Positions 25,497 to 61,600 of a stretch of 64,000 nucleotides of DNA are shown piece after piece. Origin of the DNA: Penicillus capitatus (taxonomy: Eukaryota; Plantae; Chlorophyta). A program made the position numbers and the translations under genes. Below the pieces are notes generated by a model. The model saw only the letters and a list, made by a program, of their open reading frames with translations. It was not told the DNA's origin and made no database searches. The stretch covers positions 329,411-393,410 of the forward strand of contig OZ287708.1 in the NCBI GenBank assembly GCA_965649825.1. Reading direction: 5' to 3'. How positions within the stretch are numbered: the stretch's first letter is position 1; each line of letters starts with the position of its first letter.

Positions 25497-25912
25497 GAAG
25501 TGGCGATGCCCGCAGCATCGCTCAAGTGTAAAGTCATTCGAACACGTAACTACGTGCGTTGATGGACTCACAGTGCGTAACAGTGTGCGAAGCCGTGGCT
25601 TCGACTCAGCTTGGTATGAACAACCCGAAAAGGCGATACGAAAACACCTGACGTGAAATTCCGCCGACCGTCAAACTAGGCTGATGTGACAGCTCATGAT
25701 CGATCCGTATTCTCAGGCAGCGTCCGACCCTTTCACTGCAACTGCACGATGCCAACCAGCTCTCAACCGCCACACTTGGTGTCTACGACGACCAGTGAAT
25801 ACGAACCGAATGCCCCATGGGCATCAAAGGGGCGCCAAGCGAAGAGATGAACGGCTCGCTTGTTCTCAGAACTCGTGACTTGATTTTGCATCGTGATAGG
25901 AATAGGGAAAGA

Positions 25913-27202: not shown

Positions 27203-27464
27203 GATGCCTTTGCAGATTCACCTACCCGTTGTCCGATTCAAACTCGAGCCATCCCGTTCAACATCTACAGGCCACTCAGTCGAGAAGGGAACGGCTTGGG
27301 GGATAATACGCATGGTCGATCGATGCAACATTCTTAGCAATCACGATTTAGAACAGCTTCACATTCGGTCGCGTCGCAGATGACGATCCCTTAAGTCTTT
27401 GATCGTTCTATCAGGCGAATAAAACACAATCGAACCATCCAGTCGTTGGACTGTTCGTCACCGG

Positions 27465-29871: not shown

Positions 29872-30130
29872 TTGGATGCTGCCAAGACAGTCAGTTCACA
29901 AGGTAAGGTGGCTATTGCAGAGAGCAAATGTGATGGGACATTCGTGTGGTGGTTGGTCTTCAGGGATTTTGCGTCTTCGCTGATGGATCTGGACTTTGCA
30001 CCAGCAGGACGTGAATTTGTGGCCGGTGGCTTTGATCGGATGGCTAAGACTGTTCGAGAAAGGGCACCAGGAAGCAAAGATGTCTACTCCATTCCTCGCA
30101 TGTCACGACGGTCTTCCTTCTGTTCTAGTC
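29872..30130 (+). pseudogene. DCAF13/SOF1-like WD40 fragment, decayed
   Basis: LDAAKTV..|DFASSLMDLDFAPAGREFVAGGFDRMAK..SKDVYSIPRM resembles the SOF1 segment MDxDFSPTGREFVxGSxDR..REVYHTKRM; no intact full-length frame in the flanks. Confidence 0.65.
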
Positions 30131-31777
30131 TTGATGCAACGTATGTCTTTTGCGTCAGAATCAAACACAATGGCACTATGTGTGGTGTTTACGTATCCCT
30201 ACTTCTAAGAACAGACAGTTTCCACAGGTTTTCGACCATTGTCGACTCTCTAATCGAAATACCTTGTACTTGCTGCCCGTTTCGCGTTCCTGCTTCTTTT
30301 CCACGTCAGTGATCGACTTGGCGTGCATCTGCAATCATCACTAGACACAGGCAAATAGACTTTTTCGTGCCGCGTCCGATTCAGAGATATTAGCTCCTGT
30401 TTCGTCTGGCATCATCCCCTTTGTCTCGTCTCGATTTGCCTGGCGAAACATCGAGGAGTGGACAGTCGCATTGTTTTGGCACCCCCGTTCGTCGCGAACA
30501 GACTCTCTCTCTCTCTCTCTCTCATCCGAAATCGTTTACCGTCTGCAGAGCGCGTCGTTTAATGTGTGTTCTCTCGCACTGTTTTCTGAAGACGCTTTGT
30601 TATCCGAATGCGTCTTTCGGACTCGATCCAACGCGTCGACGGTGGCATGCATCTCGGTGTTCAATGAGGAATGCCGCGTCACAGGTCCAAATGGCAGAGC
30701 CAAGAGCAGTCATTTCTACAGTGTCTGTCTTTCATGTATTCTACAGAGCATTTGCCGCACGAGAGAACATCGCCAGCTCTGACGACATCGTCCTAGAACG
30801 CCCCACGCACGTAGAGCACTCGGAGGTAGTTAGTCTTTCATTACAGAGATTTTCCAGAAGTGTATCCAAACAGAAAACAGACATTCTCCGTCACAGCCCT
30901 CATAGCCTCAGAACTCGCCAGATACTAGAACGGAACGGCATGGACGATTCCAACGAGGATGCAGCAGCATGCCATCCACTTCCAATGGTAATCCACCACT
31001 TTGGTGCGCTCTGCACGGTGGAACACGCCGAAAAGAAAGAAGGCGACGACATTAGATCGCGACTGGCTTCGACCGCGATCAACTGCGCCATCACGTAGGT
31101 TGCTCTCGAAACTGTCTGATCGATGGCTTCGCAGACAGAACAGCAATCTTGCACAGCAGCCACACAACGCGATAGAACTTCGCTAGTTGGAGCGAACGGC
31201 GTCTTCCAAGGCACTCACTCGACGCTATGCGCGAGCACGAACCGAAACGACGACTCCGCGGCCGTCTGGTTCTCGCAGGGCGTCGTTCGGTTCCGCCTTC
31301 CATGTTCGAGGGAGTTAGGACCAACGGCAACTCCTCAAACCGACTCGCGTTACACTGCGCAGATCGCTCTCTCGACGGTGTTTGCGACGGAAACGCCCGC
31401 AAGAGACGGCCGTCTAGACAAAGAGTCTTTGCCGCTCCTGCGAACGAGAACGCCCGCCTCATACCTCTGCCCGGGCAACGCGGAGCTGGCTCGAGCGGTT
31501 GGCTGTTGGGAGAATCGCGTCTGAGAGGCCGTAGAGAACGCATGCGGTTACACTCAGAGAGGTCCATGCCGAACAAACTGTAAAGAATTTCCTCTGTAAA
31601 ACACTCTGCAAAGCGTCCAGAAGCGCTCTTTCGTTCGCGTCGCGCATCCAGACGACAGCATCCTGCGTTTCCGGACATCTGGCGGCCGTTTCTTTGTCCG
31701 GCGGCGCATGCATGCGCCGCCAACGGTCACAGTTCCCAACCGCCACCCGCAGGCCGCGCCCGGCAACCGAAGCGGTC

Positions 31778-31783
31778 TATAAA
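31778..31783 (+). promoter_or_regulatory. TATA box (TATAAA) of Pro-rich gene P1; the same box is at 43804-43809 (P2) and 58202-58207 (P3)
   Basis: CTATAAAGGTCCTGTCACA is conserved about 85 nt upstream of the ATG in all three copies. Confidence 0.7.
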
Positions 31784-31861
31784 GGTCCTGTCACAAACCT
31801 TTCCGCACTGTCGAGTTTTCTGAACTCCTTCTGTTTTCTTCGAGCACAAGCAACGACGACA

Positions 31862-33207
31862 ATGGCCGACGCACACCTCACCGCCGAAGACGATTACGGC
31901 TATCCGGGAAGACCGTAAGTCCTCTGACCATGTTTCAACGCGCCGCGCGCTACGGACCTCTGCGACTGCGGCCAGGACGCCTTTCATGTGCTGGCATGCG
32001 TCCGGCTGCAGTCGAAACGTCGGCGGCTACTTGCTTTCGAGAATGCGCAGCCATCCTGTTCTTCGGGACATCTCTAACTAACCTTTGTGTGTTTTTTAGA
32101 TTCGACCAGGTGACCTTGCCGGAGGTCTTGGGAAGTCATCCGCCCAGGGCCTTCATGGGTATGGACCTGGCCGCGAGAGAGCAGTGGTTTTGGGCTCTGA
32201 GGGGCCAACAGCTCCCCGAGGAGCAGGCCCCTCCTGTGCGGGTTGGTCCCAATAGGGACCAACCCGCACGGCCGCGGCCCGGTCGGCGGGCAAGGAGGAT
32301 CTCCGCCGAGGAGAGGAGAGCGCGGCTGGCCCAAGAGGGCCAGCCTGCTGCACAGCCACCACCGGCACGCCGTCCATCACCGCCGCCTGCAGTTTCTGAG
32401 CCGCCGACATCATCACCGCCTGGCCCACATCCGGCATCGTCGCCGCCAACCGAGACGCCAGTAGCTCCTACTCAGGCCCAGCCGGCCTCGCAGCCGCCAG
32501 CAGTACCCCAGCCGTTCCCGCCGCCGCCCATGCAGTGGTCGCCAGTGCCACCAGCGGCTCATCAACATGCCCAGCCGAGCACGCCGCCGCCTCAGGCCTG
32601 CCAGTCGAGCGCACCGCCGCCTCAGGCCTGCCAGTCGAGCGCACCGCCGCCTCAGGCCTGCCAGTCGAGCGCACCGCCGCCAATGGAGTGGTCACCAGTA
32701 CCGCCAGCGGCGCATCCTCATGCCCAACCCGCCGCACCGACTCCGGCATCATCGCAGCCCCCGTGTCCGGCTGCCATGGAGTGGTCATCCGGTCCCTTTC
32801 CGCAGCCGACCCCGACCATGTCCCCTCCCTCCCTGCAGCCTACCAAGCCTCCACTTTTTCCCCCTCGCCCCCAGGTATTTTGCATCCCAGCTTCCCCGCC
32901 CCCGGTCATCCCCTCACGGCCTCTAAAGTACTCACTCCCCTTTTGCCCACCTTTTCCTACGCGCACTTCTGTCTTCTCCCTACGCTCTTATCCACCCCCA
33001 ATCCCCCCACGCCCATTTATCTTCTCCGTCGGCCCGCTCGGTATCCCTCCCCGGCCGTATTTTCTCTCAGGCCAGTGTGTGACGGTGGGCCCAGCCATAC
33101 CAGAGCGACTCTTCTTCCTATCGGGACAATGTGTAAGTTACTCTTCAGTTCCATCCCTCTTTTGATGTGTTTTTGTGTAGGTTTTCATTGAAGATTGGTC
33201 AGTCTGA
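31862..33207 (+). CDS. Orphan proline-rich protein P1 (370 aa); exons 31862-31914, 32100-33132, 33181-33207
   Basis: Splice sites are conserved across three paralogs and the spliced length is divisible by 3. MADAHLTAEDDYGYPGRP|FDQVTL...LSGQC|VFIEDWSV*; internal 30-bp x3 repeat (APPPQACQSS) at 32581-32680. Confidence 0.85.
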
Positions 33208-33625
33208 GGGCCTTTTTCTGCAATTTTTTGAGCTGTTTTCTTTCTCGACAACAAAATTAAAAAAAACAAAAAAAACTGATATGGCTGTTTTCGTTCCTTG
33301 TTGTTTCTGCCATGCCACCTTCGCTTTGTTGTGGATGGCTCTGCGTTAGCAGTTTTTACATAGAGGCTGTCAAAAGCTCATTTGCTGTTTTGCTTTCCCG
33401 GAGGCTAAAGTGTCCTAAACTGCTGTCTTGCTGCCTGGAGATTGCCATGTCCGACTTTGCTGTCTAGCCGTGGATGAAATCTGCCATGTTTCTACTTGAT
33501 GTTTCTTTTGTGAAGAGGCCTGTGGTCGTCTTATTTTCTGTTTTGCTCTACTGAGGTGTTTTTGTCCCAATCTGCTGTTTTGCTTTCGGAGACCTCAGTG
33601 TCCTATAACCTGTTTAGCTGCCCGG

Positions 33626-34460
33626 GCTATGCCGTGTGACTGTCTAGCTGCTGCCGTCTGCCGCCCGGAGGATGCCTTGACTGTCTACCTGCTGCCGTCT
33701 GCCGTCTGCCGCCCGGAGCATGCCTTGACTGTCTACCTGCTGCCGTCTGCCGTCTACCGCCCGGAGGATGCCTTGACTGTCTACCTGCTGCTGTTTGCTA
33801 CTGGAGGCCGTGACTATCTACCTGCTGCCGTCTGCCGCCCGGAGGAAGCCGTGACTGTCTAGCTGCTGCCGTCTGCCGCCCGGAGGAAGCCGTGACTGTC
33901 TAGCTGCTGCCGTCTGCCGCCCGGAGGATGCCGCCCGGAGGAAGCCGTGACTGTCTAGCTGCTGCCGTCTGCCGCCCGGAGGATGCCGCCCGGAGGAAGC
34001 CGTGACTGTCTAGCTGCTGCCGTCTGCCGCCCGGAGGATGCCTTGACTGTCTACCTGCTGCCGTCTGCCGTCTGCCGCCCGGAGGATGCCTTGACTGTCT
34101 ACCTGCTGCCGTCTGCCGTCTACCGCCCGGAGGATGCCTTGACTGTCTACCTGCTGCTGTTTGCTACTGGAGGCCGTGACTGTCTACCTGCTGCCGTCTG
34201 CCGACCGAAGGATGCCGCCCGGAGGATGCCGTGACTGTCTACCTGCTGCCGTCTGCCGCCCGGAGGATGCCGCCCGGAGGATGCCGTGACTGTCTACCTG
34301 CTGCCGTCTGCCGACCAGAGGATGATGCCGTGACTGTCTACCTGCTGCCGTCTGCCGTCTGCCGCCCGGAGGATGCCTTGACTGTCTACCTGTTGCTGTC
34401 TGCTGCCTGAAGGATGATGCCGTGACTATGTACCTGCTGCCGTCTGCTGCCCGAATGAAT
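33626..34460. repeat. Minisatellite family 1, about 41-48-bp units (GCCGTGACTGTCTACCTGCTGCCGTCTGCCGCCCGGAGGAT)
   Basis: About 17 variant units read directly; related units recur at 45890-46030. Confidence 0.92.
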
Positions 34461-34649
34461 GATGCCTCCTTGACTATGTACCTGCTGCTTGGTGTAGATG
34501 GAGGCCGCCGCCGTTCAATTTCCTTCCTCGCTGCCCGAACAATCACACGTGTGGCACCGCTACCTGGAGGCCACAGTCGTTCGATCCGCTGCCTTTGTGT
34601 GGATGGAGGCCGCAGTCGATCTACATGCTGCCTTGCAGATCATTGAAGG

Positions 34650-37600
34650 CGACCGCCACACTACTTGCCGCCTTGCCGTGATTGCGAGGCGGCGGTCGTA
34701 AAACCTGCGGCCTCGCTGACCGGGGTCACAGTCGTAAAACCTGCGGCCTCGCTGACTGGGGTCGCAGTCGTCCACTTGCCACCTTGCCCTGGATGCAAGG
34801 CGGCTGGCTACCTACCTACCGCCTGCCGCCTGGAGAACGAAGTCGCTCTAGCTGCCGCCTTGTCGTGGATGCGAGGCGGCAGTCGCCATATCTGTCGATT
34901 GCCACCTGGAGGAAGAGGTCGTCCTACTTGCCGCCTCTTTGTAAATGCGAGGCGGCTGTCGCACAAGCAGCGACCTGGATTCCCAGATGCCGCAGTCGTC
35001 CTACTCGCCGCCTTGCCGTGGATGCGAGGCGGCTGTCGCCAAACCTGCGACCTGGATGCCCGAAGGCCGCAGACACAATGCCTGCCGCTGCCGCCCAGAG
35101 AACGAAGTCGCCCTACTTGCCGTCTCGCCATGGATGCGAGGCGGCTGTCGACTTACTTGCCGCTGCCGACCAGAGATGAAGTCGCACTACCTGCCGCCTT
35201 GCCTGACACCTGGATGCCGAAGTCGTCCAACTCGCCGCCTCGTCGTGGATGCGAGGCGGCGGACGCCTTACCTGCCGCTGCCGACCAGAGATGAAGTCGC
35301 ACTGCCTGCCGCCTTGCCGTGGATGCAAGGCGGCTGTCGCCCTGCCTGACACCTGGATTCCTCAGTCGTCCAACTAAACCGCCTTGCTCTGGATGCGAGG
35401 CGACTGTCGCCACTACCTGCTGCCTTGAAGACAACTCGAGGCAGCAGTCGACCTACTTGCCGCAGACGCAATACCTGCCGCCTCGTCGTGGATGCGAAGC
35501 GGCTGTCGCCCTGCCTGACGCCTGGATGCCGAAGTCGTCCAACTCGCCGCCTCGTCGTGGATGCGAGGCGGCGGACGCCTTACCTGCTGCCTTGCAGATC
35601 ATTGAAGGCGACCGCCACACTACTTGCCGCCTTGCCGTGATTGCGAGGCGGCGGTCGTAAAACCTGCGGCCTCGCTGACCGGGGTCACAGTCGTAAAACC
35701 TGCGGCCTCGCTGACTGGGGTCGCAGTCGTCCACTTGCCACCTTGCCCTGGATGCAAGGCGGCTGGCTACCTACCTACCGCCTGCCGCCTGGAGAACGAA
35801 GTCGCTCTAGCTGCCGCCTTGTCGTGGATGCGAGGCGGCAGTCGCCATATCTGTCGATTGCCACCTGGAGGAAGAGGTCGTCCTACTTGCCGCCTCTTTG
35901 TGAATGCGAGGCGGCTGTCGCACAAGCAGCGACCTGGATTCCCAGATGCCGCAGTCGTCCTACTCGCCGCCTTGCCGTGGATGCGAGGCGGCTGTCGCCA
36001 AACCTGCGACCTGGATGCCCGAAGGCCGCAGACACAATACCTGCCGCTGCCGCCCAGAGAACGAAGTCGCCCTACTTGCCGTCTCGCCATGGATGCGAGG
36101 CGGCTGTCGACTTACTTGCCGCTGCCGACCAGAGATGAAGTCGCACTACCTGCCGCCTTGCCGTAGATGCAAGGCGGCTGTCGCCCTGCCTGACACCTGG
36201 ATGCCGAAGTCGTCCAACTCGCCGCCTCGTCGTGGATGCGAGGCGGCGGACGCCTAACCTGCCGCTGCCGACCAGAGATGAAGTCGCAATACCTGCCGCC
36301 TCGTCGTGGATGCGAGGCGGCGGACGCCCTGCCTGACACCTGGATGCCGAAGTCGTCCAACTCGCCGCCTCGTCGTGGATGCGAGGCGGCGGACGCCTTA
36401 CCTGCTGCCTTGAAGACAACTCGAGGCAGCAGTCGACCTACTTGCCGCAGACGCAATACCTGCCGCCTCGTCGTGGATGCGAGGCGGCGGACGCCCTGCC
36501 TGACACCTGGATGCCGAAGTCGTCCAACTCGCCGCCTCGTCGTGGATGCGAGGCGGCGGACGCCTTACCTGCTGCCTTGAAGACAACTCGAGGCAGCAGT
36601 CGACCTACTTGCCGCAGACGCAATACCTGCCGCCTCGTCGTGGATGCGAGGCGGCGGACGCCCTGCCTGACACCTGGATGCCGAAGTCGTCCAACTCGCC
36701 GCCTCGTCGTGGATGCGAGGCGGCGGACGCCTTACCTGCTGCCTTGAAGACAACTCGAGGCAGCAGTCGACCTACTTGCCGCAGACGCAATACCTGCCGC
36801 CTCGTCGTGGAGCGAGGCGGCGGACGCCTTACCTGCTGCCTTGATGACAACTCGAGGCAGCAGTCGACCTACTTGCCGAAGACATCTTACCTGCCGCCTC
36901 GCCGTGGATGCGAGGCGGCTGTCGCCCTGCCTGACGCCTGGATGCCGAAGTCGTCCTACTCGCCGCCTCGCCGTGGATGCGCGGCGGCGGACGCCTTACC
37001 TGCTGCCTTGAAGACAACTCGAGGCAGCAGTCGACCTACTTGCCGCAGACGCAATACCTGCCGCCTCGTCGTGGATGCGAGGCGGCGGACGCCTTACCTG
37101 CTGCCTTGATGACAACTCGAGGCAGCAGTCGACCTACTTGCCGAAGACATCTTACCTGCCGCCTCGCCGTGGATGCGAGGCGGCTGTCGCCCTGCCTGAC
37201 GCCTGGATGCCGAAGTCGTCCAACTCGCCGCCTCGTCGTGGATGCGAGGCGGCTGTCGCCCTGCCTGACGCCAGGATGCCGAAGTCGTCCTACTCGCCGC
37301 CTCGCCGCCTCGCCGTGGATGCGAGGCGGCTGTCGCCTTACCTGACGCCAGGATGCCTGGATGGCCGCAGACGCAATACCTGCCGCCTCGCCGTGAATGA
37401 GAGTCGGCTGTCGCCAAAACTGCGACCTTGATGCCCGGGGTCGCAGTCTTCCACTTGCCGCCTTGTTCTGGATGCAAGGCGGCTGTCGCACTATTAGCGA
37501 CCTGGATTTCGGGCTGCTACAGTCGTCCTACCTTCCGTCTGCCGCTGCCGCCCAGAGGACGAAGTCGTCCTACTCGCCGCCTTGCCGTGGATGCGAGGCG

Positions 37601-37700
37601 ACTGTCGCCTTACCTGCTGCCATGGAGTTCATTGGTGGCCGCAGACGCAATACCTGCCGCCTCGCCGTGGATGCGAGGCGGCTCTCGTCTTACCTGCCGC
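34650..37700. repeat. Minisatellite family 2: about 35 stem-loops GCCGCCTYG-N9-CRAGGCGGC with reused linkers and higher-order repeats
   Basis: Hairpins spaced about 70-115 bp apart; 959-bp-offset duplication (34626-35202 vs 35585-36161); 167-bp units at 36357, 36524 and 36691. Confidence 0.95.
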
Positions 37701-39796
37701 ATTGACGATCTTTGGAGACCGAAGTCGCCGACTTTAAGTTCTCTTTTCATGAAATTGCACTTTCTTACTCTTTCTCTGCAGACTTTGTTGCGGGGTGTAT
37801 CTTATCCTTCGCGAACCACTGTTTTATCGATTTTGCGCTTGAGATCACACTTTTTAAAAAAGAATGACCTTTTTACAAGCGTTTTGAACAATTGAAATCC
37901 GTTCTTTTAACATTTATCGAGCGCGAGTTACGATTCGACAACGGAACGCTGTATGTCGACGCCTTCCCGTCCATTGCCGAGGGCGTTGTTCAGGCGCGTT
38001 AAATCGTGAAGCTCGTTACCATCTGCTGTGGGAAGACGCATGGCATCCACAGACCTGTTTCCTGCATTCGCTTCCTAGGGACAGGCGAAGATGACGCGAC
38101 GTCTACTTCGTGCATGCACCGTCGACCCAGGTTTCGAAACTCGGCAAGCACGTCGCACTGTGCGACCGCGATGAATTGCCTTACCCTATCGTGTGTTGCG
38201 CTACTGCCTGTCTGCAACATCACGGCTACAAGCTTCCGTCCGATGGGCTTGCACTCGAGTGCCTTGTGTCGGTGTCGTTCAGTGCCCGAAAGCTTGGAAG
38301 CGTGCCTGCGGATGAGAATCGACTTGTGGCGGCTGTGTCGATGAAGTGGCGATAGGAGAGCGAGGGAAGAGAGCCTCGTCGGTATGCATCACTCTAAAGA
38401 AGTGGCGACTCGCCCTTTCTGTTTACGGATCTATTCGAAACGACACGTTTCGGGCGATGTCCGATATGGCGACAGCATTATCGCCAGAAGCAAAAAGGTA
38501 GCTGCACGTTGTCGACTGACGGCGGCGTGCTCCGAAGGGAGGAGCGCCAGACGAACGATTGTCTCTTCGAAGTTGTTTACACGATGTATCGTCTAAGATT
38601 CTGGGCGCACTCCTTCCGTTGTCTGAGGAGCGGAGTGCATTAAATTCCGTGCAGTCGGTTGCCCGGACAGAGAAGACTATGCGCATCGTCACGACGAAGG
38701 CGTCGTTTTCGTTTCATCGCCTTGGCGGCTCCGCAGTTTAAGCGAAGAACGACAGAGGAGGAACACGGAAGGCTTCGACGAAAGCCGAACAGATACAAGA
38801 ACAGCGTGAACTCTGGAGAGGCTAGAGTCGCGAAGCCGTCGACGCAACGCTCACAGGAACGCGTGTTCGACAGTTCAGATGGCGTCAACTGACTGGAGCT
38901 GTACCATTCGACGCGACCAGCGACAGCTCCAATGCTCCATATTCAAGGCGCGTCTTGCCGATTTGGACGACTCGCCCTTTCGCTGGTCCGCGTTGCTCGT
39001 GTTCGGTGGACCCTTTAACGAGGCCTCGCCTTTCAAGTTCTCGGACAACGACATCAAGATCTACGCGTCTCCGCGTGTCGCTCGTTCGATTTCGAGTAGA
39101 TCGTCGGAATGGCATCCGACCGCTCGTCAAGTGGAGACGCCTGTCCGAACGCCGATGTCGCCGCCGCGGGAAAAAGATCTCGGCATTGCGCGCGTGTACA
39201 AAGCGACCTTCGCCCTTTGTCGGAAAGTCAGAGACCAGAAATGAGAATCAAACAACATCCCCCAAGACGATGCAGAGTGGATCATCCTCGTAAGCCTGGG
39301 TGAATCTCGCCTCCTGAGCTGAATGTGTTTGCATCATCATCCTCGGGAACTGTTAAAGTCCCTTTGGAACACGGACGTTTCCGAATCCGCCTCATCGTGC
39401 GCGACAGGAATGCCGGCCACTTCAGCGCAGTACAGGGAAATGATTGCGGTGTGAGCGGTGAATGAAAGGAAAGAGCGTCAAGACGGCGCGCGAGCTTGCG
39501 GCGACGGAAGTGCTGAGCGTTCAGGACGTCTGAAGGCAATAGGACCGCGATGACTCCTCGAAGAGAGACCTCTGCAAATCGTGTGGTCTGTTTCTGCTCG
39601 GAAGTTCTGTCGAGACGCCTCTAACGAGCTCCTCGGTGCGAATCTCCAAGCGAATCGACGTCCACTTATGAGGAGCTCCAGGTAGGTGTATAGGCATCGT
39701 TGCCCGACGACAACATAGACGGTCGGTTCACGGCATCTTGTGACGCGCGTCCCTAGACGGAGGCAGTGTTCATTCGGTGTCCAAGTGGAGCAAAGG

Positions 39797-39960
39797 ATGC
39801 ATGCGTTTTGTTTTACGTATCTCTATGCGGTGCTGCTAGCGTTGGGCGGATTCATCGGTTTAGCTACCGAAGGCAGGAATGGCTCGCTCGGAGGCGGTGT
39901 GGGTTCTGGCGCCGTGCACAATCTTCCTGCGCACACCAGTCTGCTCTGCTACGTGCCGGG
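39797..39960 (+). pseudogene. TMEM14/FAX (fatty-acid export)-like N-terminal fragment
   Basis: MHAFCFTYLYAVLLALGGFIGLATEGRNGSLGGGVGSG resembles plant TMEM14 MHDFCFTIPYG..GG.IG...GS..SL.GG; the homology is lost afterwards. Confidence 0.6.
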
Positions 39961-43889: not shown

Positions 43890-45182
43890 ATGGCCGAAGC
43901 ACACATGTACACAGAGGACGACTACGGATATCCTGGCAAACCGTGAGTCCTGTGGCCATTTGTCGACGCGTCGCGCGCTGCAGAGCCTTTCGACTGCAGC
44001 TGGACACTCTCCATGAACACAACACGCATGCGTCCGGCTGCAGTCGAGAAGCTCTGCAGCGCGCGACGCGTCGACGAACTCTTCCTCGACTGATCTCTAA
44101 CTCTTCTGTGTGTTCCTAGATTTGACCAGGTGACGTTGACGGAGGTCCTGGGCAGTCACCCGCCCAGGGCCTTCGAAGGCTTGGACGAGGCCGCGCGTGT
44201 GCAGTTGTATTGGGACCTAAAATCCCGAACAACTGCACAGAGGGGTCAAGCGCACATCGATGCGCAGACCCCTCCTGTGCGGTTTGGACCCAATAGGGTC
44301 CAAACCCCACAGCCGCGGCCTGTGCGGCGGGCAAGGGTCCTCTCCAGCGAGGAGAGGAGAGCGCGGCTGGCCCAAGAGGGCCAGCCTGCTGCACCTCCGC
44401 CGCCCCAGCGTGTCCCGCCCTATGCGCCGCCTCCGCCGACCTCCGAGCCTGCCGCACCGCCTCCGTGCAGCCAGCCGCCAGCCCAGCCACCCGTCTCCCA
44501 GGTTGGCGCACCACCGGCAGCCTCTCAGCCTGCTGCTCCTCCACCCGTCTCGGAGCCAGCCCAGGGGCCTGTCGATCCTCAGGCCCAGCCTGCCGCACCG
44601 CCTCCAGTCTGTCAAGCGGCCCAGTCTCCCCAGATGGAGTGGTCTTCTGCGCCGCCAGCTGCGCCGTTTACCCAGCCGCCTGCCAGCTATACTGCCCAGT
44701 CGTCAGCCGCCATTCCCGTCGAGTCTCCCCAGATGGAGTGGTCCCCTGTTCCATTCCCGCAGCCGACCCTCTCTCCGCCTTCTCTGCAGCACAGCCAGAC
44801 CCCCTTGTTCCCTCCCCGACCGCAGGTTTTCTGCATTCCTGCCTCCCCTCCCCCCGTAATTCCGTCTCGTCCCTTACTTTTTTCCCTACCTGCTCTTCCA
44901 TCCCCCTTTCCTAAACGGACATCGCTCTTTTCCCTCCGTCAGCCACCCCCCATCCCTCCCCGTAACTCTATTTTTCCGGTCAGACGACCTGGATTCCCTC
45001 CCCGACCTTTTTTTATGTCTGGCGAGTGCTTACAGATCTGCCCTCCAGCCATCCCGCAGCGACTGTTTTTCATGTCGGGAGAATGTGTAAGTGAATCATT
45101 CTTTTTAAGTCTCTCTAATGCTATGTTTGCTGTGTAGGTTTCAATCCAGAACTGGCCTGTATGGGGGGCCAGACCCTTTTGA
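43890..45182 (+). CDS. Orphan proline-rich protein P2 (354 aa); exons 43890-43942, 44120-45086, 45138-45182
   Basis: Same exon phases as P1 and P3; MAEAHMYTEDDYGYPGKP|FDQVTL...MSGEC|VSIQNWPVWGARPF*. Confidence 0.85.
43962..44075 (+). ncRNA. Intronic 44-bp inverted repeat (pre-miRNA-like hairpin) in P2 intron 1
   Basis: Arms 43962-44005 and 44032-44075 are reverse complements with two G-U pairs and one C-A mismatch; 26-nt loop. The structure is seen directly; an RNA function is inferred. Confidence 0.45.
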
Positions 45183-45569
45183 GTTTTTCTAGCTGTCATC
45201 TTGGGGGTAAAAATTTAAAAAAAAACAAAAGTTTTTATTTTCTTCTGTCACATCTCACATTTTTTATGTGAGATGTCTGAAAAACTTAAAGAACAAAAAA
45301 AAAACAAAAGGGGCTGTTTTCGTTGTTTTGATGTCTCTGCCATTCCACCTTCGCTCTGTTGTGGTTGGCTGTGTGTTACATATATTTGCCTGGAGGCTGG
45401 TGTGTCCTGCGTGCTGTTTTGATGTCATCGGAGGCTGGAGGCTGGGTTATTTACCTGATGTCATTGGAGGCTGTAGGCTGGTGTATACTGTCTCATGTCA
45501 TCGGAGGCTGAATAGCTGGATATTTTACCTGATGTCATTGGAGGCTGTAGGCTGGATATTTTACCTGAT

Positions 45570-45880
45570 GTCATTGGAGGCCCGGAGGCCCTCGTCGATG
45601 TTCTGCTGCTGCCCTGCTGTCGCTGGAGGCCGGAGGCCCGAGGCCCTCGTTCTGCTGCTGCCCTGCTGTCGCTGGAGGCCCGAGGCCCTCGTCGATGTTC
45701 TGCTGCTGTCCTGCTGTTGCTGGAGGCCCGGAGGCCCTCGTCGATGTTCTGCTGCTGCCCTGCTGTCGCTGGAGGCCCGAGGCCCTCGTCGATGTTCTGC
45801 TGCTGCCCTGCTGTCGCTGGAGGCCCGAGGCCCTCGTCGATGTTCTGCTGCTGTCCTGCTGTTGCTGGAGGCCCGGAGGA
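45570..45880. repeat. 48-bp minisatellite (GGAGGCCCGAGGCCCTCGTCGATGTTCTGCTGCTGCCCTGCTGTCGCT), about 6 units
   Basis: Units at 45771 and 45819, for example, are 48 bp apart. Confidence 0.9.
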
Positions 45881-46029
45881 TGATACCTCCGTGACTGTCT
45901 AGCTGCTGATGTTTGCTACTGGAGGACGCCGTGACTATGTACCTGCTGCCTGCTGCCGACCGGAGGATGCCTTGACTGCCTACCTGCTGCCGTCGGCCGC
46001 CCGGAGGATGCCTTGACTGCCTACCTGCT

Positions 46030-46782
46030 GCTTGGTGTGGATGGAGGCCGCCGCCGTTCAATTTCCTTCCTCGCTGGCCGAACAATCACACGTGTGGCAT
46101 CGCTACCTGGAGGCCACAGTCGTTCGATCCGCTGCCTTTGTGTGGATGGAGGCCGCAGTCGATCTACATGCTGCCTTGCAGATCATTGAAGGCGACCGCC
46201 ACACTACTTGCCGCCTTGCCGTGATTGCGAGGCGGCGGTCGTAAAACCTGCGGCCTCGCTGACTGGGGTCGCAATCGTCCACTTGCCACCTTGCCCTGGA
46301 TGCAAGGCGGCTGGCTACCTACCTGCCGCCTGCCGCCTGGAGAACGAAGTCGCTCTAGCTGCCGCCTTGTCGTGGATGCAAGGCGGCATTCATCCTACCT
46401 GCCGCTTGCCGGATGGAGGACGGTGTCGCTTTAGCCGCCTTGCATTGGATGCGAGGCGGCAGTCGCCATATCTGTCGATTGCCGCCTGGAGGAAGAGGTC
46501 GTCCTACTTGCCGCCTCGTTGTAAATGCGAGGCGGCTGTCGCACAAGCAGCGACCTGGATTCCCAGATGCCGCAGTCGTCCTACTCGCCGCCTTGCCGTG
46601 GATGCGAGGCGGCTGTCGCCAAACCTGCGACCTGGATGCCCGAAGGCCGCAGACACAATACCTGCCGCTGCCGCCCAGAGAACGAAGTCGCCCTACTTGC
46701 CGCCTCGTCGTGGATGCGAGGCGGCTGTCGACTTAATTGCCGCTGCCGACCAGAGACGAAGTCGCACTACCTGCCGCCTTGC
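46030..46782. repeat. Diverged copy of the 34470-35200 segment, including about 8 family-2 hairpins
   Basis: Collinear match beginning CTTGGTGT.GATGGAGGCCGCCGCCGTTCAATTTCC. Confidence 0.9.
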
Positions 46783-46949
46783 TGCTGATGATGGCTTTCT
46801 CTGCGTTTGGATGCCTGCGTAGGCGTCCCTACCTGATCATTCGCTGCTAATGGAGGCAGCCATAGGCTACCAGCCCGACCGCTCTGGCTGCCAGTGGAGG
46901 CAGTAATCAGCGGTTTACCTTTTGCTCTGGCCGTCACTAGAAGCAGTCT

Positions 46950-49140
46950 CAGGCGTCCACCCGACGTCTGGCCGCCGCTGGAGACAGTCTCAGGCGTCTG
47001 CCCCGACTGCTGGCCGCCGCTGGAGACAGTTTCAGGCGTCTGCCCCGACGTCTGGCCGCCAATGGAGGCGGTCTCAGGCGTCCACCCGACGTCTGGCCGC
47101 CAATGAAGCCACACAGGCACCCTTCCTACCCTATCGCCGCCGCCGGAAACAGTCGCAGGCGTCCTACCTGACGTCTGGCCGCCGCTGGAGACAGTTTCAG
47201 GCGTCTGCCCCGACATCTGGCCGCCACTGGAGACAGTCTCAGGCGTCCTACCTGACGTCTGGCCGCCAATGAAGCCACACAGGCGACCTTCTCACTGTCT
47301 CGCCGCCACTGGAGACAGTCTCAGGCGTCTGCCCCGACATCTGGCCGCCACTGGAGGCGGTCGCAGGCGTCCTACCTGGCGTCTGGCCGTCAATGGAGGC
47401 CTTTCGACCGCTCTGACTGCCAGTGGAGGCAGTCATGGGCGGCTTACCGACCGCTTTAGCTGCACTGGGGACAGTCTCAGGCGTCCACCCGACGTCTGGC
47501 CGCCAGTGAATGCGGTCACAGGCGTCACCTACCTACTGTCTCGCCGCCACCGGAGACAGTCGAAGACGCCACTGGAGACAGTCTCAGGCGTCCTACCTGG
47601 CGTCTGGCCGCCAGGGGAGACAGTCTCAGGCGTCTGCCCCGACATCTGGCCGCCATTGGAGGCGGTCTCAGGCGTCCGCCCCGACGTCTGGCCGCTAATG
47701 AAGCCACTCAGGCACCCTTCCTACTGTCTCGCCGCCACCGGAGACAGTTCTAGGCGTCCACCCGACGTCTGGCCGTCCGTGGAGACACTATCAGGCGTCC
47801 ACCCGACGTCTGGCCGCCAATGGAGGCGGTCACAGGCGTCACTTACCTACTGTCTCGCCGCCACTGGAGACAGTATCAGCCGTCCACCCGACATCTGGCC
47901 GCCACTGGAGACAGTCTCAGGCGTCCGCCCCGACTTCTGGCCGCCAATAAAGCCACACAGGCGTTACTTACCTACTGTCTCGCCGCCACCGGAGACAGTA
48001 TCAGCCGTCCACCCGACATCTGGCCGCCACTGGAGACAGTCTCAGGCGTCCGCCCCGACATCTGGCCGCCAATGGAGGCGGTCTCAGGCGTCACTTACTT
48101 ACTGTCTCGCCGCCACCGGAGACAGTTCTAGGCGTCCACCCGACTTCTGGCCGGCAATGGAGGCGGTCTCTGGCGTCCGCTCCGACTTCTGGCCGCCAAT
48201 AAAGCCACACAGGCGTTACTTACCTACTGTCTCGCCGCCACCGGAGACAGTTCTAGGCGTCCACCCGACTTCTGGCCGCCAATGGAGGCGGTCTCTGGCG
48301 TCCGCTCCGACTTCTGGCCGCCAATGGAGGCGGTCTCTGGCGTCTGCCCCGACATCTGGCCGCCAATGGAGGCGGTCTCAGGCGTCTGCCCCGACATCTG
48401 GCCGCCAATAAAGCCACACAGGCGTTACTTACCTACTGTCTCGCCGCCACCGGAGACAGTTCTAGGCGTCCACCCGACATCTGGCCGACAATGAAGGCGG
48501 TCTGAGGCGTCCTACCTGACGTCTGGCCGCCAATGGAGGCGGTCTCTGGCGTCCGCTCCGACATCTGGCCGCCAATGGAGGCGGTCTCAGGCGTCCGCCC
48601 CGACATCTGGCCGCCAATAAAGCCACACAGGCGTTACTTACCTACTGTCTCGCCGCCACTGGAGACAGTCTCAGGCGTCCGCCCCGACATCTGGCCGACA
48701 ATGGAGGCGGTCTGAGGCGTCCTACCTGACGTCTGGCCGCCAATGGAGGCGGTCACAGGCGCCCTTCCTACTGTCTCGCCGCCACTGGAGACAGTCTCAG
48801 GCGTCCGCCCCGACATCTGGCCGCCAATAAAGCCACACAGGCGTTACTTACCTACTGTCTCGCCGCCACTGGAGACAGTCTCAGGCGTCCGCCCCGACAT
48901 CTGGCCGCCAATGGAGGCGGTCTCAGGCGTCCGCCCCGACATCTGGCCGCCAATGGAGGCGGTCTCAGGCGTCCGCCCCGACATCTGGCCGCCAATGGAG
49001 GCGGTCTCGGGCGTTCTGCCTACTATCTGGCAACCAATGGAGGCCGTCAGGAATCACTTTTCTGACATCCGGCGGCCGAGAGAAGCCATCAGCGAAGATC
49101 TCTTTCCGACGTCTGGCGGCCAAGAGAGGCCGTCAGGGAT
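46950..49140. repeat. Minisatellite family 3, 42-bp monomer (CCGCCAATGGAGGCGGTCTCAGGCGTCCGCCCCGACATCTGG) with variants; flanked by ~69-bp related repeats at 46850-46940 and 49260-49500
   Basis: Exact 42-bp period at 48905 and 48947; about 50 variant monomers. Confidence 0.95.
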
Positions 49141-51339
49141 CACCTGTGCCATAGAAGGAGGCTATGCCAACATAGTGGACTACTTACGAAGCAAAGGGGC
49201 AGCAACGTATTACCTGCCTCACATCTGGCCGCCAACGGAGGCCTATCAACTGCTTTGACTGACTGCAGGCAGCCATTGGCGGTTTACCTTCTGCTTTGGA
49301 CGTCACTAGAGGCCTACCAACCGCTTTGGCTGCACTGGAGGCAGCCATTGGCGGTTTACCTTCTGCTCTGGACGTCACTAGAGGCCTACCCACCTCTATG
49401 GCTGTCACTGGAGGCCTATCGACCGGTTTGGCTGCACTGAAGGTTGTCATGGCCGGTTTATCTTTTGCTGTGGCCGTCACTAGAGGCAGTCTGGGTGCCC
49501 TACCTTGTCTTTGCTATTGCTGGAGGCCTTCTCTGCGATTGGAAGCTTTCGTGGAGCGTCCTACCTGATGCCTAGCGGCTGCGTGGCGGCCATCATGTCG
49601 AGAAAAATACAATCTGCTGATTGGTGAAAAAAGGCCATTTTTCCTCGCCGACTATGTTCTGTGAAATGACAGATTTGGATGTTTGCTCCGGGTAGCATAC
49701 TGTTTCTGATCAATAAGCACAGATGTAGAAACGAAACCGCAGTTTTTACGAGATTGAAGAACACAACTGTAAAAGCATAAAATGTTCAAGTTACAGCGCG
49801 CTCTGTGGTTGGACGTATCGATAGACCACCGAAAATAGCGAGGAAGAAGATGAAGCTGACGGTGGGGCAGCAGCCATAGTGTGGAACGACGCACTGTGGT
49901 GGCTAGACAGAATACGTGATACGCATTCGCCCATCGAATCCACATCCAGCAGTTCTCTGAGCATTGCGCTCGCGTAGATGCGCTGGAAGGGCACGAACAG
50001 AATCCACGACGATTCACCGTCGGGTTCCAGCACATGGGACACTCTGATAACCAAGGCGATGTGCTCGCGTCTGCAGGACAGTGCCTCTTTGTGAAGCGTC
50101 TTCTCCGTCTCCGTTGAGAGAACCGAGGAGGAATTCGTTCTCTTGTCTAGTCTCAGCTTATCGTCTCCTTGCACGCAGACATCGATGTGATATTGATTCG
50201 AGCAGTGCTTGGCAACACCATCTAACTGTCGTGGATCTTCTTAGCTGCTCGTTCAGTCCGGTCAGAACATTCGCAATTCGGATCTCCGTGCGTTCTCAGG
50301 TTTCCTCTGAGACTCCGATTTCCTGTTGGCGAAAATAAACTTGGAAAGCTCTGACTTCGTCGTTCGTCTTAAGTTCAGCTGCATGGAAGGTGCTGTCGTT
50401 CAACTTTGTCCTTTCGGCACACGACTTCTCTACGTCTGTCGATCTTCAGGGCATCAGGAAGCACATCAAGGACGTGTTATTTATTGACTCCGGTGAACGA
50501 TAGGCGAAGATGTGTCTTCGGAACATTGTCCCGCTGAAGAATCCCTCATCAGGTAAGGAAGATCAAGGCTTCATCCCGACGAGAGTCGCCGTCGCGCGTG
50601 GCGAGTGAATTCTCACTGTCGCGTTCTAAAACAATTGCGACACTCTGCCAATTCGTGTTCAATGCCAACCTTGTCTGAGATTTTACACGGCGAACTCTAC
50701 TGTGAAGAAGGCAAATCTGCCGATTCCGTTTTTTGACTCTCGACTTGGCAGTCCTGACAGAACGAAGAGTACAGGAGACGACCATTCGGACGAGTTAAGG
50801 ATTTTAAACCGCTACACAATTCCAACTTTCGACGATGAAAACAAGAGATTCGAAACTGCGATTTCGCTACTTGGTATCTGCTTATCGTAAAAATGATGCT
50901 GCACAAACAGATGTCTAAGACCGAGCTCAGTCGTTGGTGGGCATGGCAGATGAAGAGCGCAGACTGCGGTCGATTCGTTGCAGGACATCGCGCGCGATGC
51001 TTGGCGCGCGCGAGATGATATCGGACGGTGGAGGAGATGGATCTTCGACCATGGTCGTACGTTCTGAGGTCGGATGGGAGTCTCTGTGTCTGTAGGACGG
51101 CAAGCAAAGGTAGGGCATCGTAATCGGCTGCGATGCCGATGAAATCGAGCTTTTCCTGCCACACCATCGATTAGCCCATCGCCATGTTTGATATGCGTCG
51201 ACCACGTATGAGTATCGCTGTGCGTCCTTCGACGGGGATTTCTGCTACCGGGCGATACCACCTTGCTCCTCGCCACTGACACCAGCGTATCCACGTCTCT
51301 CTTTTGCGTCGTCTGCGAAAACGAAAAAACGGATGCGAC

Positions 51340-58287: not shown

Positions 58288-59467
58288 ATGGCCGAAGCAC
58301 GCATGTTCACAGAAGACGACTACGGATATCCTGACAGACCGTGAGTCCTGTGGCCATTCGTCGACGCGTCGCGCGCTACGGAGCCTTTCGACTGCGGCTG
58401 GACACTCTCCATGAACACGCATGCGTCCGGCTGCAGTCGAGAAGCTCTGCAGCGCGCGACGCGTCGACGAACTCTTCTTCGACTGATCTCTAACTCTTCT
58501 GTGTGTTCTTAGATTTGACCAGGTGACGTTGAGGGAGGTCCTGGGCAGTCACCCGCCCAGGGCCTTCGAAGGCTTGGACGAGGCCGCGCGTGTGCAGTTG
58601 TATTGGGACCTAAAATCCCGAACAACTGCACAGAGGGGTCAAGCGCACATCGATGCGCAGACCCCTCCTGTGCGGTTTGGACCCAATAGGGTCCAAACCC
58701 CACAGCCGCGGCCTGTGCGGCGGGCGAGGGTCCTGTCCTCAGAGGACAGGAGAGCGCGACTGGCCCAACAGGGCCAGCCTGCCGCTCCGCCGCCTCCAGC
58801 GCGCCCCGCTCCGCCGCCGCCTGCAGTCTCAGAGCCACTGCCGTGCCAACATCCGGCATCACCAGCGCCAGCGCCAGCCGAGACTCCTCAGGCCCAGCCG
58901 GCCTCGCCGCCAGCAGCACCCCAGCCGAGCGCGCCTCTGCCGATGGATTGGTCGCCAGTGCCGCCGGCAGCTTATTCTCAGGCCCAGTCAGCCGCACCGA
59001 CTCAAGCATCATCGCAGCCACCGTGTCCAACTGTCATGGAGTGGTCATCCTGTCCCTCTCCTCAGCCGACCCCGACAATGCCCGCTTCCGTCACCCAGTC
59101 CATCAAGCCTCCACCTTTCCCCCCTCGCCCACAGGTGTTTTGCATCCCAGCGTCCCCGCCTCCACTTATCCCCTCGCGCCTGTTTAAGTTTTCATTCCCC
59201 TTTTTCCCACCTTCCTTTCCTGTACGCACCTCCCAGTTTTCCTTACCCTGCCCCCCTCCAATCCCACCACGCCCCTTTGTCTTTTCCGTCGGGCCCCTCG
59301 GTATCCCTCCCAGACCGTATTTCCTCTCCGGCCAGTGTGTGCCCATCGGTCCTGCCATTCCAGAACGGCTTTTCTTTCTATCAGGCGAATGTGTAAGTTA
59401 CTCTGCATTTCCTTCTCTCTTTCAATGTGTTTTTCTGTAGGTTTTCATTGAAGATTGGTCTCTCTGA
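58288..59467 (+). CDS. Orphan proline-rich protein P3 (319 aa); exons 58288-58340, 58513-59392, 59441-59467; mosaic of P2 (5') and P1 (3')
   Basis: Intact spliced frame MAEARMFTEDDYGYPDRP|FDQVTL...LSGEC|VFIEDWSL*. Confidence 0.85.
58357..58471 (+). ncRNA. Intronic inverted repeat (pre-miRNA-like hairpin) in P3 intron 1
   Basis: The right arm is identical to that of P2; left-arm changes give two G-U pairs and one A-C mismatch; the stem is extended by a terminal TTC/GAA. Confidence 0.45.
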
Positions 59468-59869
59468 GGGCCTGTTTGTTTAGTTTTTTGAACGCTGTTT
59501 TCTTTTTTGAAAGAAAAATATAAAAAGAAACAAAGATCTGAAAGGGCTGTTTTCGTTTCTTGCTGTTTCTGCCATTCCACCTCCGCTTTGTAGTGGATGG
59601 TTGTGTGTTTTCTGTTTTTACATAGAGGCTGTCAAGGGCCCATCTGCTGTTTTGTTTGCTCGGAGGCTGAAGTGTCCTAACCTGCTGTCTTGATGCGATC
59701 AAAGGCCTGGAGGCTGTCATAGATGTTCTATTTACTGCTTGTTGTCATTGGAGTGCGCCATGGATGTTCTACCTGCCGCTATTGCTGTCTTGCTGGAGGC
59801 CTTCGTAAATCATCTACATGATCTCTTGCTGCTGCTGCTGCTGCTGCTGCTGGAGAACTTCTCTTGCCG

Positions 59870-61600
59870 CGTGGAGGCAGTCGTTTTCGAACTACCTGAT
59901 GCCTGGAGGCTGTGTGGAGGCCGTCTTTTTCGAACTACCTGATCTCTGGAGGCTGTGTGGAGGCCGTCTTTTTCGAACTACCTGATCTCTGGAGGCTGCG
60001 TGGAGGTCGTCTTTTTCGAGCTACCTGATCTCTGGAGGCTGCGTGGAGGTCGTCTTTTTCGAGCTACCTGATCTCTGGAGGCTGCGTGGAGGCTTTCTTT
60101 TTCGAACTACATGATGCCTGGCGGCTGCATGGAGGCCGTCGTGTCCGTCTCACCTGATCTCTGGCGGCTGCATAGAGGCCGTCGTTTCTGAACTACATGA
60201 TGCCTGGCGGCTGCATGATTCCGTCATCAGCGTTCTACCTGATCTCTGGCGGCTGCATAGAGGCCGTCGTGTCCGTCTCACCTGATCTCTGGCGGCTGCG
60301 TGGAGGCTGTCTTTTTCGAACTACATGATGCCTGGCGGCTGCATGGAGGCCGTCGTGTCCGTCTCACCTGATCTCTGGCGGCTGCGTGAAGGCCGTCATC
60401 AGCGTTCTACCTGATCTCTGGCGGCTGCATAGAGGCCGTCGTTTCTGAACTACATGATGCCTGGCGGCTGCATGGAGGCCGTCGTTTCTGAACTACATGA
60501 TGCCTGGCGGCTGCATGGAGGCCGTCTTTTCCGAACTACCTGATGCATGGCGGCTGCATGAGACCGTCGTGTCCGTCTCACCTGATCTCTGGCGGCTGCG
60601 TGAAGGCTGTCTTTTTCGAACTACATGATGCCTGGCGGCTGCATGGAGGCCGTCGTGTCCGTCTCACCTGATCTCTGGCGGCTGCGTGGAGGCTGTCTTT
60701 TTCGAACTACATGATGCCTGGCGGCTGCATGGAGGCCGTCTTTTCCGAACTACCTGATGCATGGCAGCTGCATGAGACCGTCGTGTCCGTCTCACCTGAT
60801 CTCTGGCGGCTGCGTGAAGGCTGTCTTTTTCGAACTACATGATGCCTGGCGGCTGCATGGAGGCCGTCGTGTCCGTCTCACTTGATCTCTGGCGGCTGCA
60901 TGGAGGCCGTCTTTTTCGAACTTCATGATGCCTGGCGGCTACATGAGACCGTCGTGTCCGTCTCACCTGATCTCTGGCGGCTGCGTGGAGGCTTTCTTTT
61001 TCGAACTACATGATGCCTGGCGGCTGCATGGAGGCCGTCGTGTCCGTCTCACCTGATCTCTGGCGGCTGCGTGGAGGCTTTCTTTTTCGAACTACATGAT
61101 GCCTGGCGGCTGCATGGAGGCCGTCGTGTCCGTCTCACCTGATCTCTGGCGGCTGCGTGAAGGCTGTCTTTTTCGAACTACATGATGCCTGGCGGCTACA
61201 TGAGGCCGTCTTTTTCGAACTACCTGATGCCTGGCGGCTGCATGAGGCCGTCTTTTTCGAACTACCTGATGCCTGGCGGCTGCATGAGGCCGTCGTTTCT
61301 GAACTACCTGATGCCTGGCGGCTGCATGAGGCCGTCATCGGCGTCCTACCTGATCTTTGGCCGCGTGGAGGCCGTCGTGGCGGCGTCCTACCTGACGTCT
61401 GGCGGCGGCGGAAAGGCTGTCTTAAGCGTCCTTCCTGATCTCCTGCTGCTACTGGAGGCCTTCACAGCGAATGAAGGCCGTCGTGGCGGCGTCCTACCTG
61501 ACGTCTGGCGGCGGCGGAAAGGCCGTCTTAAGCGTCCTTCCTGATTTCTGGCGGCTGCATGAGGCCGTCTTTTCCGAACTACCTGATCTCTGGTGGCTGC
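59870..61600. repeat. Minisatellite family 4, about 43-bp monomers often as an 86-bp dimer (CTACATGATGCCTGGCGGCTGCATGGAGGCCGTC../CTCACCTGATCTCTGGCGGCTGCGTGGAGGCTGTC..)
   Basis: 86-bp period at 60621 and 60707; about 38 monomers; the array ends with one family-2 hairpin at about 61611-61637. Confidence 0.95.

Follow-up and report, generated by a model that had tools for sequence, protein, structure and literature searches.

The 64,000-nucleotide (nt) stretch of Penicillus capitatus contig OZ287708.1 analysed here (the window; positions are counted from its first letter) contains three paralogous loci, each with a gene for a proline/arginine-rich protein followed by its own downstream array of tandem repeats. 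Our main focus is on the array behind the first of these genes, in which one short hairpin recurs 43 times on the + strand, and on the signs that its stem has been kept as a structure of the sense-strand RNA. The three genes, all on the + strand, share one architecture: a TATA box (CTATAAAGG, 31777..31785 in paralogue 1) kept in all three copies ~85 nt 5' of the ATG, a 53-nt exon 1 (MAEAH..DDYGYPGRP), a GT-AG intron with a CTAAC branch site, a ~1-kb proline-rich exon, a second intron of 48-51 nt, and a final exon with the stop after 8-14 codons. Paralogue 1 (31862..33207, 370 aa) has coding exons at 31862-31914, 32100-33132 and 33181-33207 (TGA at 33205) and introns at 31915-32099 (GTAAGT...CTAAC...TAG) and 33133-33180. 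Paralogue 2 (43890..45182, 354 aa) has exons at 43890-43942, 44120-45086 and 45138-45182, and paralogue 3 (58288..59467, 319 aa) at 58288-58340, 58513-59392 and 59441-59467. The same in-frame model holds at all three loci, with the frame preserved over both introns in each, and the ratio of nonsynonymous to synonymous divergence (dN/dS) between copies is ~0.25 at a dS of 0.6-1.2.

Past the stop codon of paralogue 1, the + strand carries an A-rich stretch followed by ~40-nt modules of degenerate sequence (UGCUG...GGAGGCU...) that are conserved in related loci (33208..33635). Such modules begin ~100-400 nt past the stop codon at 33205, and the arrays of locus 1 run for 4.5 kb, to 37723. Tandem Repeats Finder and repeat families define an array of 41-55-nt units (CTGCCGTCTGCCGCCCGGAGGATGCCGTGACTGTCTACCTG) at 33636..34560, followed by the 43-hairpin array at 34563..37723. 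A detailed listing combined with a covariance model places the 43 copies between 34667 and 37682: 36 have the form GCCGCCTYG-N9-CRAGGCGGC, with a loop that is mostly YCGTGGATG, and seven are variants of the form GCTGCC...GGCAGC (GCTGCCTTG-AAGACAACT-CGAGGCAGC) with T:A in place of C:G at pair 3:25, a compensated change. One of the 36, at 36792, has a 1-nt loop deletion and was recovered by the covariance model. Seven more copies at 46210-46725 and one at 61611 bring the total in the window to 51. With up to two mismatches allowed, the main pattern gave 50 matches, 50/50 of them on the + strand, compared to 0.02 expected from dinucleotide shuffles; covariance model scores were 45-61 bits on the + strand and ~21 bits on the minus strand, where the matches are weak echoes of the palindrome. 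The recurring perfect hairpin described in the first-pass annotation of this DNA is therefore real, with 43 copies, 36 main and seven compensated, in 34563-37723.

Within this array the hairpins alternate with smaller GUCGC-N7-GCGAC hairpins and with YGGAKGCCGAAGUCG modules. Higher-order repeats are prominent, including a 959-nt block at 98-99% identity and units of 167 and 264 nt. The small hairpin of the 77-nt unit has the loop UUACCU, and in 34563-37723 the loop of GUCGC-N7-GCGAC contains the linker motif YUACCUGC, which often reads CUUACCUG. Read on the minus strand this linker is CAGGUAAG, a consensus 5' splice site, and it resembles the 5' end of U1 small nuclear RNA. Inspection by eye found no kissing complementarity between the GUGGAU and UUACCU loops. 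No Rfam family reached its gathering score in the 64-kb window, and a search of 33170-37760 at a permissive E-value gave only noise matches of 17-24 bits to unrelated small RNAs (sRNAs). The stems, at 10-12 bp, fall below the ~20-bp stem of microRNA or other small-RNA precursors, and the head-to-tail periods of 36-431 nt with variable copy number are those of a minisatellite.

Short open reading frames (ORFs) of 100-209 aa occur in several frames of the repeats, and at the related locus L001 an 848-aa ORF spans a 147-nt x 14.8 array of 99% identity, as would be expected if the repeats encoded a repetitive protein or many micro-exons. We reject this explanation: there are stops in all six frames across 33500-37800, the unit lengths (41, 43, 69, 74, 77 and 167 nt) do not keep to multiples of three, and the host frame ends at 33205.

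The arrays of the other two loci are built from other units. At locus 2 (45420..49595, + strand, ~4.2 kb to ~49595), 36-, 41- and 48-nt units are joined by the seven-copy hairpin block at 46210-46725 with a degenerate copy beside it at 46170, by ~50 copies of a 42-nt unit (GGCCGCC-AAUGGA-GGCGGUC, 46926-49020) and by 72-102-nt units to 49487. Locus 3 (59827..61637, + strand, 1.8 kb) starts with a (TGC)8.7 microsatellite (59827-59852) and contains ~34 copies of a 43-nt unit (GGCGGCU-GCAUGGA-GGCCGUC); it ends in the lone copy of the hairpin at 61611-61637. Unit types thus vary among paralogues (41-55-nt, 69-77-nt, 42-nt and 43-nt), and the hairpin itself is present in 43, 7 and 1 copies in loci 1, 2 and 3 and in 37-67 copies in related loci.

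What the loci have in common is orientation and boundaries. Downstream arrays in sense orientation stand behind every paralogue in the window and in nine related loci. Their modules share the motifs UGGAGGC/UGGAUGC, UGCUGC and UACCUG on the sense strand. Every 3' region, also that of distant paralogues without obvious hairpins, shows enrichment of the 6-mers TGGAGG, GGAGGC and TGCTGC, whose reverse complements are near zero in the arrays; TACCTG is common to most arrays at 4-9 per kb, and its reverse complement never occurs on the + strand. All three arrays in the window close with the conserved unique element TCGCCGACTTTAAGTTCTCTTTTCATGAAAT..., which lies at 37724..37810 (+ strand) in locus 1 and recurs at 49645, at 61640 and behind the arrays of L126, L127 and L129. 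Because these oriented motifs and unique ends are common to all loci, we regard the arrays as internal expansions of a conserved downstream region.

Some further structures were seen in these regions. The stem of the 42-nt unit reads GGCCGCC-AAUGGA-GGCGGUC in the window and GGCGGCC-AGUGGA-GGCCGUC in L001 and L003, so that one pair is exchanged from C:G to G:C and another keeps its G:U wobble. This stem is disrupted in the sub-variant GCCGCCACUGGAGACAGUC, where GUCUC can pair with GAGAC instead. A perfect 11-bp hairpin (ACATCTCACAT-TTTTT-ATGTGAGATGT, 45240-45285) lies in the A-rich stretch just past the stop of paralogue 2, and the distant paralogues L002 and L005 have TGTCACAC-N7-GTGTGACA hairpins within A-rich repeats at the same place past the stop.

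The variable pairs of the hairpin stem include 8:20 and 3:25. Among the 51 copies in the window, pair 8:20 is C:G in 25, T:G in 18, T:A in eight and C:A in none. The first-pass annotation had read C:G at 36364, T:A at 35308, 36152 and 37457, and T:G at 34667 and 35007, all of them correctly, and had found no C:A at the variable pair in ~45 copies. This absence holds in the window (0/51) but not in the five-locus sample described below, where seven of 247 copies carry C:A. A:C or C:A mismatches are also found in the window at other stem positions: at 34778 and its duplicates 35737 and 46285 (position 4), 35378 (positions 1 and 2), 35477 (position 6) and 37576 (position 2). Since the array is largely a recent higher-order duplication, the 51 copies collapse to ~10 inferred changes at pair 8:20, which bears out the annotation's remark that independent mutation events are few.

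A larger sample was drawn from the window, from L004 (same genome) and from L126, L127 and L129 (a related genome at lower coverage). It comprises 247 copies, or 132 distinct 27-mers, collected with a pattern that penalises T8 and A20 alike; events were counted by parsimony on trees built from the flanks by the unweighted pair group method with arithmetic mean (UPGMA). At pair 8:20 the 247 copies are C:G 159, T:G 50, T:A 29 and C:A 7, and at pair 3:25 they are C:G 144, T:G 69, T:A 13 and C:A 4. Over the whole stem, the 132 distinct sequences contain 1001 Watson-Crick, 90 G:U, 24 A:C and 73 other combinations. Collapsing the copies of the five loci by phylogeny, a check that the first-pass annotation had itself proposed, leaves C:A far below T:G: at pair 8:20 we count 18-32 events of CG>TG compared to 4-5 of CG>CA, together with 8-11 of TG>TA, and at pair 3:25, 27-36 of CG>TG compared to 3 of CG>CA.

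Because G:U versus A:C is confounded with C>T versus G>A on the + strand, we took the baseline for these counts from the linker and loop columns, where C/T variation is ~1.9 times G/A variation. Tested on this 1.9:1 baseline, 48 versus 7 events give p = 2e-4. In addition, 10 of the 14 G20>A events fell on a T8 background, beyond the expectation from exposure (p = 0.003 or lower). The annotation had instead set the pattern against random CpG decay. That genome-wide null is the wrong yardstick because the genome shows no CpG depletion (observed/expected ~1.0-1.3 throughout), although the variable stem positions are indeed CpG sites.

The strongest point in our view is that the substitutions are specific to the arms. 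At the CpG sites of the 5' arm, C3>T is found 82 times and C8>T 79 times compared to six for G4>A and nine for G9>A; at those of the 3' arm the bias turns around, with G20>A 36 times and G25>A 17 times, mostly offsetting a T, compared to four for C19>T and five for C24>T. No strand-biased or symmetric mutation model yields this pattern; pairing on the + strand plus an extra sequence constraint on the 3' arm does. Pairing counts over the 150 best model matches (96 distinct) agree with this reading: 97.8% of cells are paired, and both-side changes occupy 19 cells compared to 7.3 +/- 2.1 in shuffles, with 0/500 shuffles as high. Three pairs have changed on both sides, among copies that are related to one another, as would be looked for in a sense-strand element of a 3' untranslated region (UTR). 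The stem thus appears to be kept by compensatory change, with wobble pairs tolerated solely in the sense-strand reading. For the annotation's idea of selection for + strand pairing with G-U allowed, the asymmetry between wobble and mismatch holds and points to the + strand, the sense strand of the gene directly upstream; the in-window evidence on its own is marginal, and part of the G:U excess is a general C/T bias of ~1.9:1. Pairing of the stem is likewise kept across loci and across two related genomes, with A:C mismatches admitted at other stem positions.

Conservation by column is consistent with constraint on the hairpin: it is 0.91-0.99 in the stem and 0.99 at loop position A16, and 0.4-0.8 in the linkers. 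The invariant loop base is A16, and the 3' arm (CRAGGCRGC) is better conserved than the 5' arm. The hairpin is also on average 1.6 kcal/mol more stable when read on the + strand (111 vs 53 distinct copies, p = 2e-9), a gain that comes from the variant stems and not from the loops. In 120-nt windows, the + strand of locus 3 folds better in 35/35. A global folding-energy asymmetry was considered as support for the + strand of the locus 1 array as well and was dropped, as 120-nt windows there favour the minus strand.

The minus strand could instead be the functional transcript. The linker CTTACCTG reads CAGGTAAG on that strand, a consensus 5' splice site, so that an antisense RNA would bear dozens of sites for the U1 snRNP and might act as a U1 sponge or as a chromatin-retained non-coding RNA. 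The density of TACCTG in most arrays, its strict orientation, and the slightly better folding of the minus strand in 120-nt windows of the locus 1 array would all be in keeping with such an RNA. However, the frequent T3 and T8 variants turn into C:A mismatches when read on the minus strand, where the hairpin is on average 1.6 kcal/mol weaker; the orientation of the motifs is tied to the upstream gene; and neither a promoter nor a gene was found from which antisense transcription could enter the array. A minus-strand gene starting from the ATG at 37751, next to the array, was also considered and dropped, because this ATG is not conserved in L126 or L129. We consider an antisense function highly improbable.

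A function at the level of DNA would be a further explanation. The arrays could terminate or pause transcription between convergent genes, take part in replication or recombination, or bind a dimeric protein, acting through hairpins, cruciforms or the palindromic duplex. The two arms are indeed perfectly palindromic, single-stranded DNA hairpins tolerate G:T wobbles too, and the arrays occupy the space from the stop codon to the conserved flank. Yet a dimeric duplex binder predicts conserved half-sites rather than covariation in which wobbles occur on one side. The motifs UGGAGGC and UGCUGC have no palindromic symmetry and strictly follow the orientation of the gene, and distant paralogues retain the motifs without the palindrome. 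We think a DNA-level role improbable, if less so than an antisense transcript.

More weight has to be given to neutrality. The array could be a palindromic minisatellite, selfish or slippage-prone DNA that spreads by unequal crossing-over, in which the T:G excess reflects strand-biased transitions, for example transcription-associated C>T changes on the non-template strand, and the stems stay perfect through quasi-palindrome template switching, gene conversion or amplification of recently perfect units. The higher-order repeats are of high identity, copy numbers differ greatly between paralogues and between the two genomes, the ~1.9-fold excess of C/T over G/A holds outside the stem as well, and the variable stem sites are CpG, with few independent events in the window. 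Strand bias, however, leaves the 79-82 C changes in the 5' arm compared to 4-5 in the 3' arm unexplained, with the guanines showing the reverse. Template switching should mend C:A and T:G alike, which gives no preference for T:G. The stem columns and A16 are conserved far above the linkers of the same units, and the oriented motifs persist in paralogues that are near synonymous saturation (dS 0.6-1.2). A wholly neutral origin therefore seems to us a minority possibility, and a serious one.

We prefer the reading in which the arrays are transcribed together with the gene and would fold into strings of hairpins on the sense strand, forming a multivalent platform for a putative RNA-binding protein, and we hold it with moderate confidence. 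Hairpin folding and selection on folding appear moderately well supported by the substitution pattern; the function as a protein-binding platform is what we infer by analogy. In this scheme the array would represent expanded sequence downstream of the gene for the disordered proline/arginine-rich protein, most likely its 3' UTR. One module type at locus 1 has become the 10-12-bp hairpin with the 7-nt loop CGUGGAU and been amplified by unequal crossing-over. The transcribed RNA would display a purine motif (YGGAKGC into CRAGGCRGC) at the junction of the loop and the 3' arm, and the second small hairpin would expose a UUACCU loop. A bound protein could control the localisation, translation or stability of this family of messenger RNAs (mRNAs), or could itself be sequestered or condensed, with copy number tuning valency.

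Several observations weigh against this preferred reading. The mRNA could already terminate ahead of the arrays, in the A-rich stretch right after the stop, where the distant L002 and L005 have AAUAAA. GGA, which the first-pass annotation had taken as the type of the loop, is indeed the consensus but occurs in just 148/247 loops (60%), and G14 and G15 are just 70-74% conserved. In 120-nt sliding windows across 34600-37723 the minus strand folds ~3 kcal/mol better. Hairpin copy number (from 1 to ~67) and unit type are highly variable, as in unconstrained minisatellites. In the window A20 was gained ~4 times, always with T8, but with so few events the association is marginal and not significant, and can only be called suggestive. 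The confounding of G:U versus A:C with C>T versus G>A on the + strand is complete, the linker and loop columns share the direction of the bias, and G:U changes are about as rare as A:C changes at stem positions outside CpG. Both-side changes are confined to 3/10 stem pairs. The copies are kin by duplication and possibly by gene conversion, and the event counts rest on crude UPGMA trees. Finally, template switching in quasi-palindromes is known to create and maintain hairpins with apparent compensatory changes in the absence of selection (PMC8794818).

It is tempting to speculate beyond the preferred reading of a sense-strand platform. The arrays may be a eukaryotic counterpart of sponge or scaffold RNAs, with up to ~65 identical hairpins in a 3' UTR read by a dedicated RNA-binding protein, conceivably through the arginine-rich helix of the encoded protein itself, so that mRNA and protein would form a condensate or localisation particle whose valency is tuned by repeat number. 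We regard this larger picture as doubtful.

The protein upstream of the arrays offers few clues of its own. Among 5.8 billion proteins it has 21 homologues, all from two ENA metagenome assemblies; it has no Pfam match, and a profile search found no relative in the PDB. Its AlphaFold model is disordered (predicted local distance difference test score, pLDDT, of 59), with two short helices, one of them arginine-rich. A Pfam match to a PNRC motif was dropped as a domain of this gene, as it belongs to another ORF. Scanning JGI metagenomes with the protein profile gave no match, and scanning JGI metagenome DNA with GTGGATGCRAGGCGGC gave single chance matches only and no arrays. The ~600 nt 5' of the TATA box (31167-31780, corresponding to 43192-43800 and 57594-58200) are 70-90% conserved in all paralogues, including the distant L002, L005 and L128, which makes this block as conserved as the coding exon or more. 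ORFs of either strand in the block have no Pfam match; it may have a regulatory role or hold a divergent gene that has escaped recognition.

The window as a whole is eukaryotic (algal) nuclear DNA, which lacks long ORFs and has housekeeping genes that are split by introns: phosphoglycerate kinase (PGK), GARS (GAR synthetase), OTCase, PIG-S, MYG1 and Rpb5 are each spread over several ORFs, and a scan of the 64-kb window found no transfer RNA (tRNA) genes. PGK (18900-20242, + strand) is of the plastid/cyanobacterial type, and its nearest named relatives are cyanobacterial and algal, which suggests a nuclear-encoded plastid enzyme and a photosynthetic eukaryotic host. The last PGK exon matches, at 100% identity, a protein from the 572-kb contig ERZ25074695:ctg340397 of an ENA assembly, and this contig also bears five further paralogues of the proline-rich gene (P0002, P0004, P0006, P0010 and P0011). 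TGTAA was considered as a poly(A) signal and dropped, being inconsistent and missing after the PGK stop. Bacterial readings of the arrays (REP arrays, a CsrB-like sRNA, terminators) were likewise dropped in view of the ORF landscape, the intron-split housekeeping genes, and the lack of tRNA and Rfam matches.

A segmental duplication (25882-40098 and 52326-64000, 92-95% identity) includes a MYG1-family gene, the proline-rich gene and 2.4 kb of downstream flank, and its two copies differ solely in the arrays. A single metagenome assembly contains two genomes of different coverage: L126, L127, L129 and L003 have 7-9x, and the window, L001, L004 and L128 have 36-41x. In the lower-coverage genome represented by the first four, flanking genes are 76-89% identical to those of the window, and the arrays are orthologous and expanded differently. 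Its terminal flank is ~97% identical to the window at locus 3 and ~85% at locus 1, which hints at divergent haplotypes or gene conversion. Elsewhere in the window, a perfect 35-nt tandem repeat of 2.7 copies lies at 10833-10926.

Should the arrays prove to be transcribed and bound, they would form a natural counterpart to engineered 24x stem-loop tags and, outside animals and bacteria, a rare case of a multivalent structured RNA in which repeat expansion changes valency over evolution. The gene family that carries them is lineage-restricted and encodes disordered proline-rich proteins that resemble SH3 ligands. With dozens of independently expanded arrays, the family also provides a data set on how hairpins are born, amplified and kept, and on selection versus template switching. 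If the arrays are neutral, they would caution that palindromic minisatellites can mimic RNA covariation.

Among known systems, the bacterial sponge RNAs CsrB and RsmZ share with the arrays many short hairpins on one strand, a purine motif in or near the loop, here with GGA in part of the copies, multivalency and a variable number of sites. They are, however, stand-alone sRNAs of 100-400 nt that bind CsrA/RsmA, whereas the array here is eukaryotic, 2-4.5 kb long and attached to a spliced protein-coding gene. Rfam gave no match to it, its hairpins do not strictly require GGA, and what is best conserved is the 3' arm CRAGGCRGC with A16. REP and BIME elements are similar in being GC-rich imperfect palindromes of ~30 nt repeated outside coding sequence. 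Those are bacterial, dispersed and often in alternating or inverted pairs, in contrast to the head-to-tail copies on one strand at three loci of a eukaryote. The similarity in architecture to REP arrays and protein-sponge RNAs that the first-pass annotation proposed does not extend beyond analogy, given the eukaryotic host and the absent Rfam match. The recognition element of Smaug/Vts1 is a hairpin loop starting with CNGG; the loop here is CGUGGAU (7 nt) or CCGUGGAUG (9 nt), and its positions 3-4 are not GG. Our search of the literature on UGGAGG and hairpin repeats in 3' UTRs found nothing relevant.

Closer in setting are eukaryotic RNAs with repeated modules. The Xist A-repeat, NORAD units, roX boxes, HSATIII and PNCTR consist of tandem modules, partly GC-rich hairpins with pyrimidine-rich linkers, and are thought to recruit or sequester RNA-binding proteins multivalently, turning over fast in sequence with their motifs kept. 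These RNAs are metazoan, either long non-coding RNAs of 8-12 units or simple satellites, and have no sequence similarity to the array here, in which 40-65 near-identical hairpins stand behind an ORF of an algal gene family. Ordinary 3' UTR minisatellites are likewise arranged head to tail in units of 35-170 nt, with higher-order structure and a varying number of copies, but they lack a compensated, conserved stem and a set of motifs kept over synonymously saturated paralogues. Synthetic MS2 and PP7 arrays (24x) come close in form, with tens of identical short hairpins of specific loop in a 3' UTR at ~40-77 nt spacing; they are engineered, whereas the array here is natural and its binding partner putative. 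In architecture the arrays of the proline-rich gene family resemble CsrB/RsmZ sponges, metazoan repeat-module RNAs and MS2 arrays, and they belong to none of these three.

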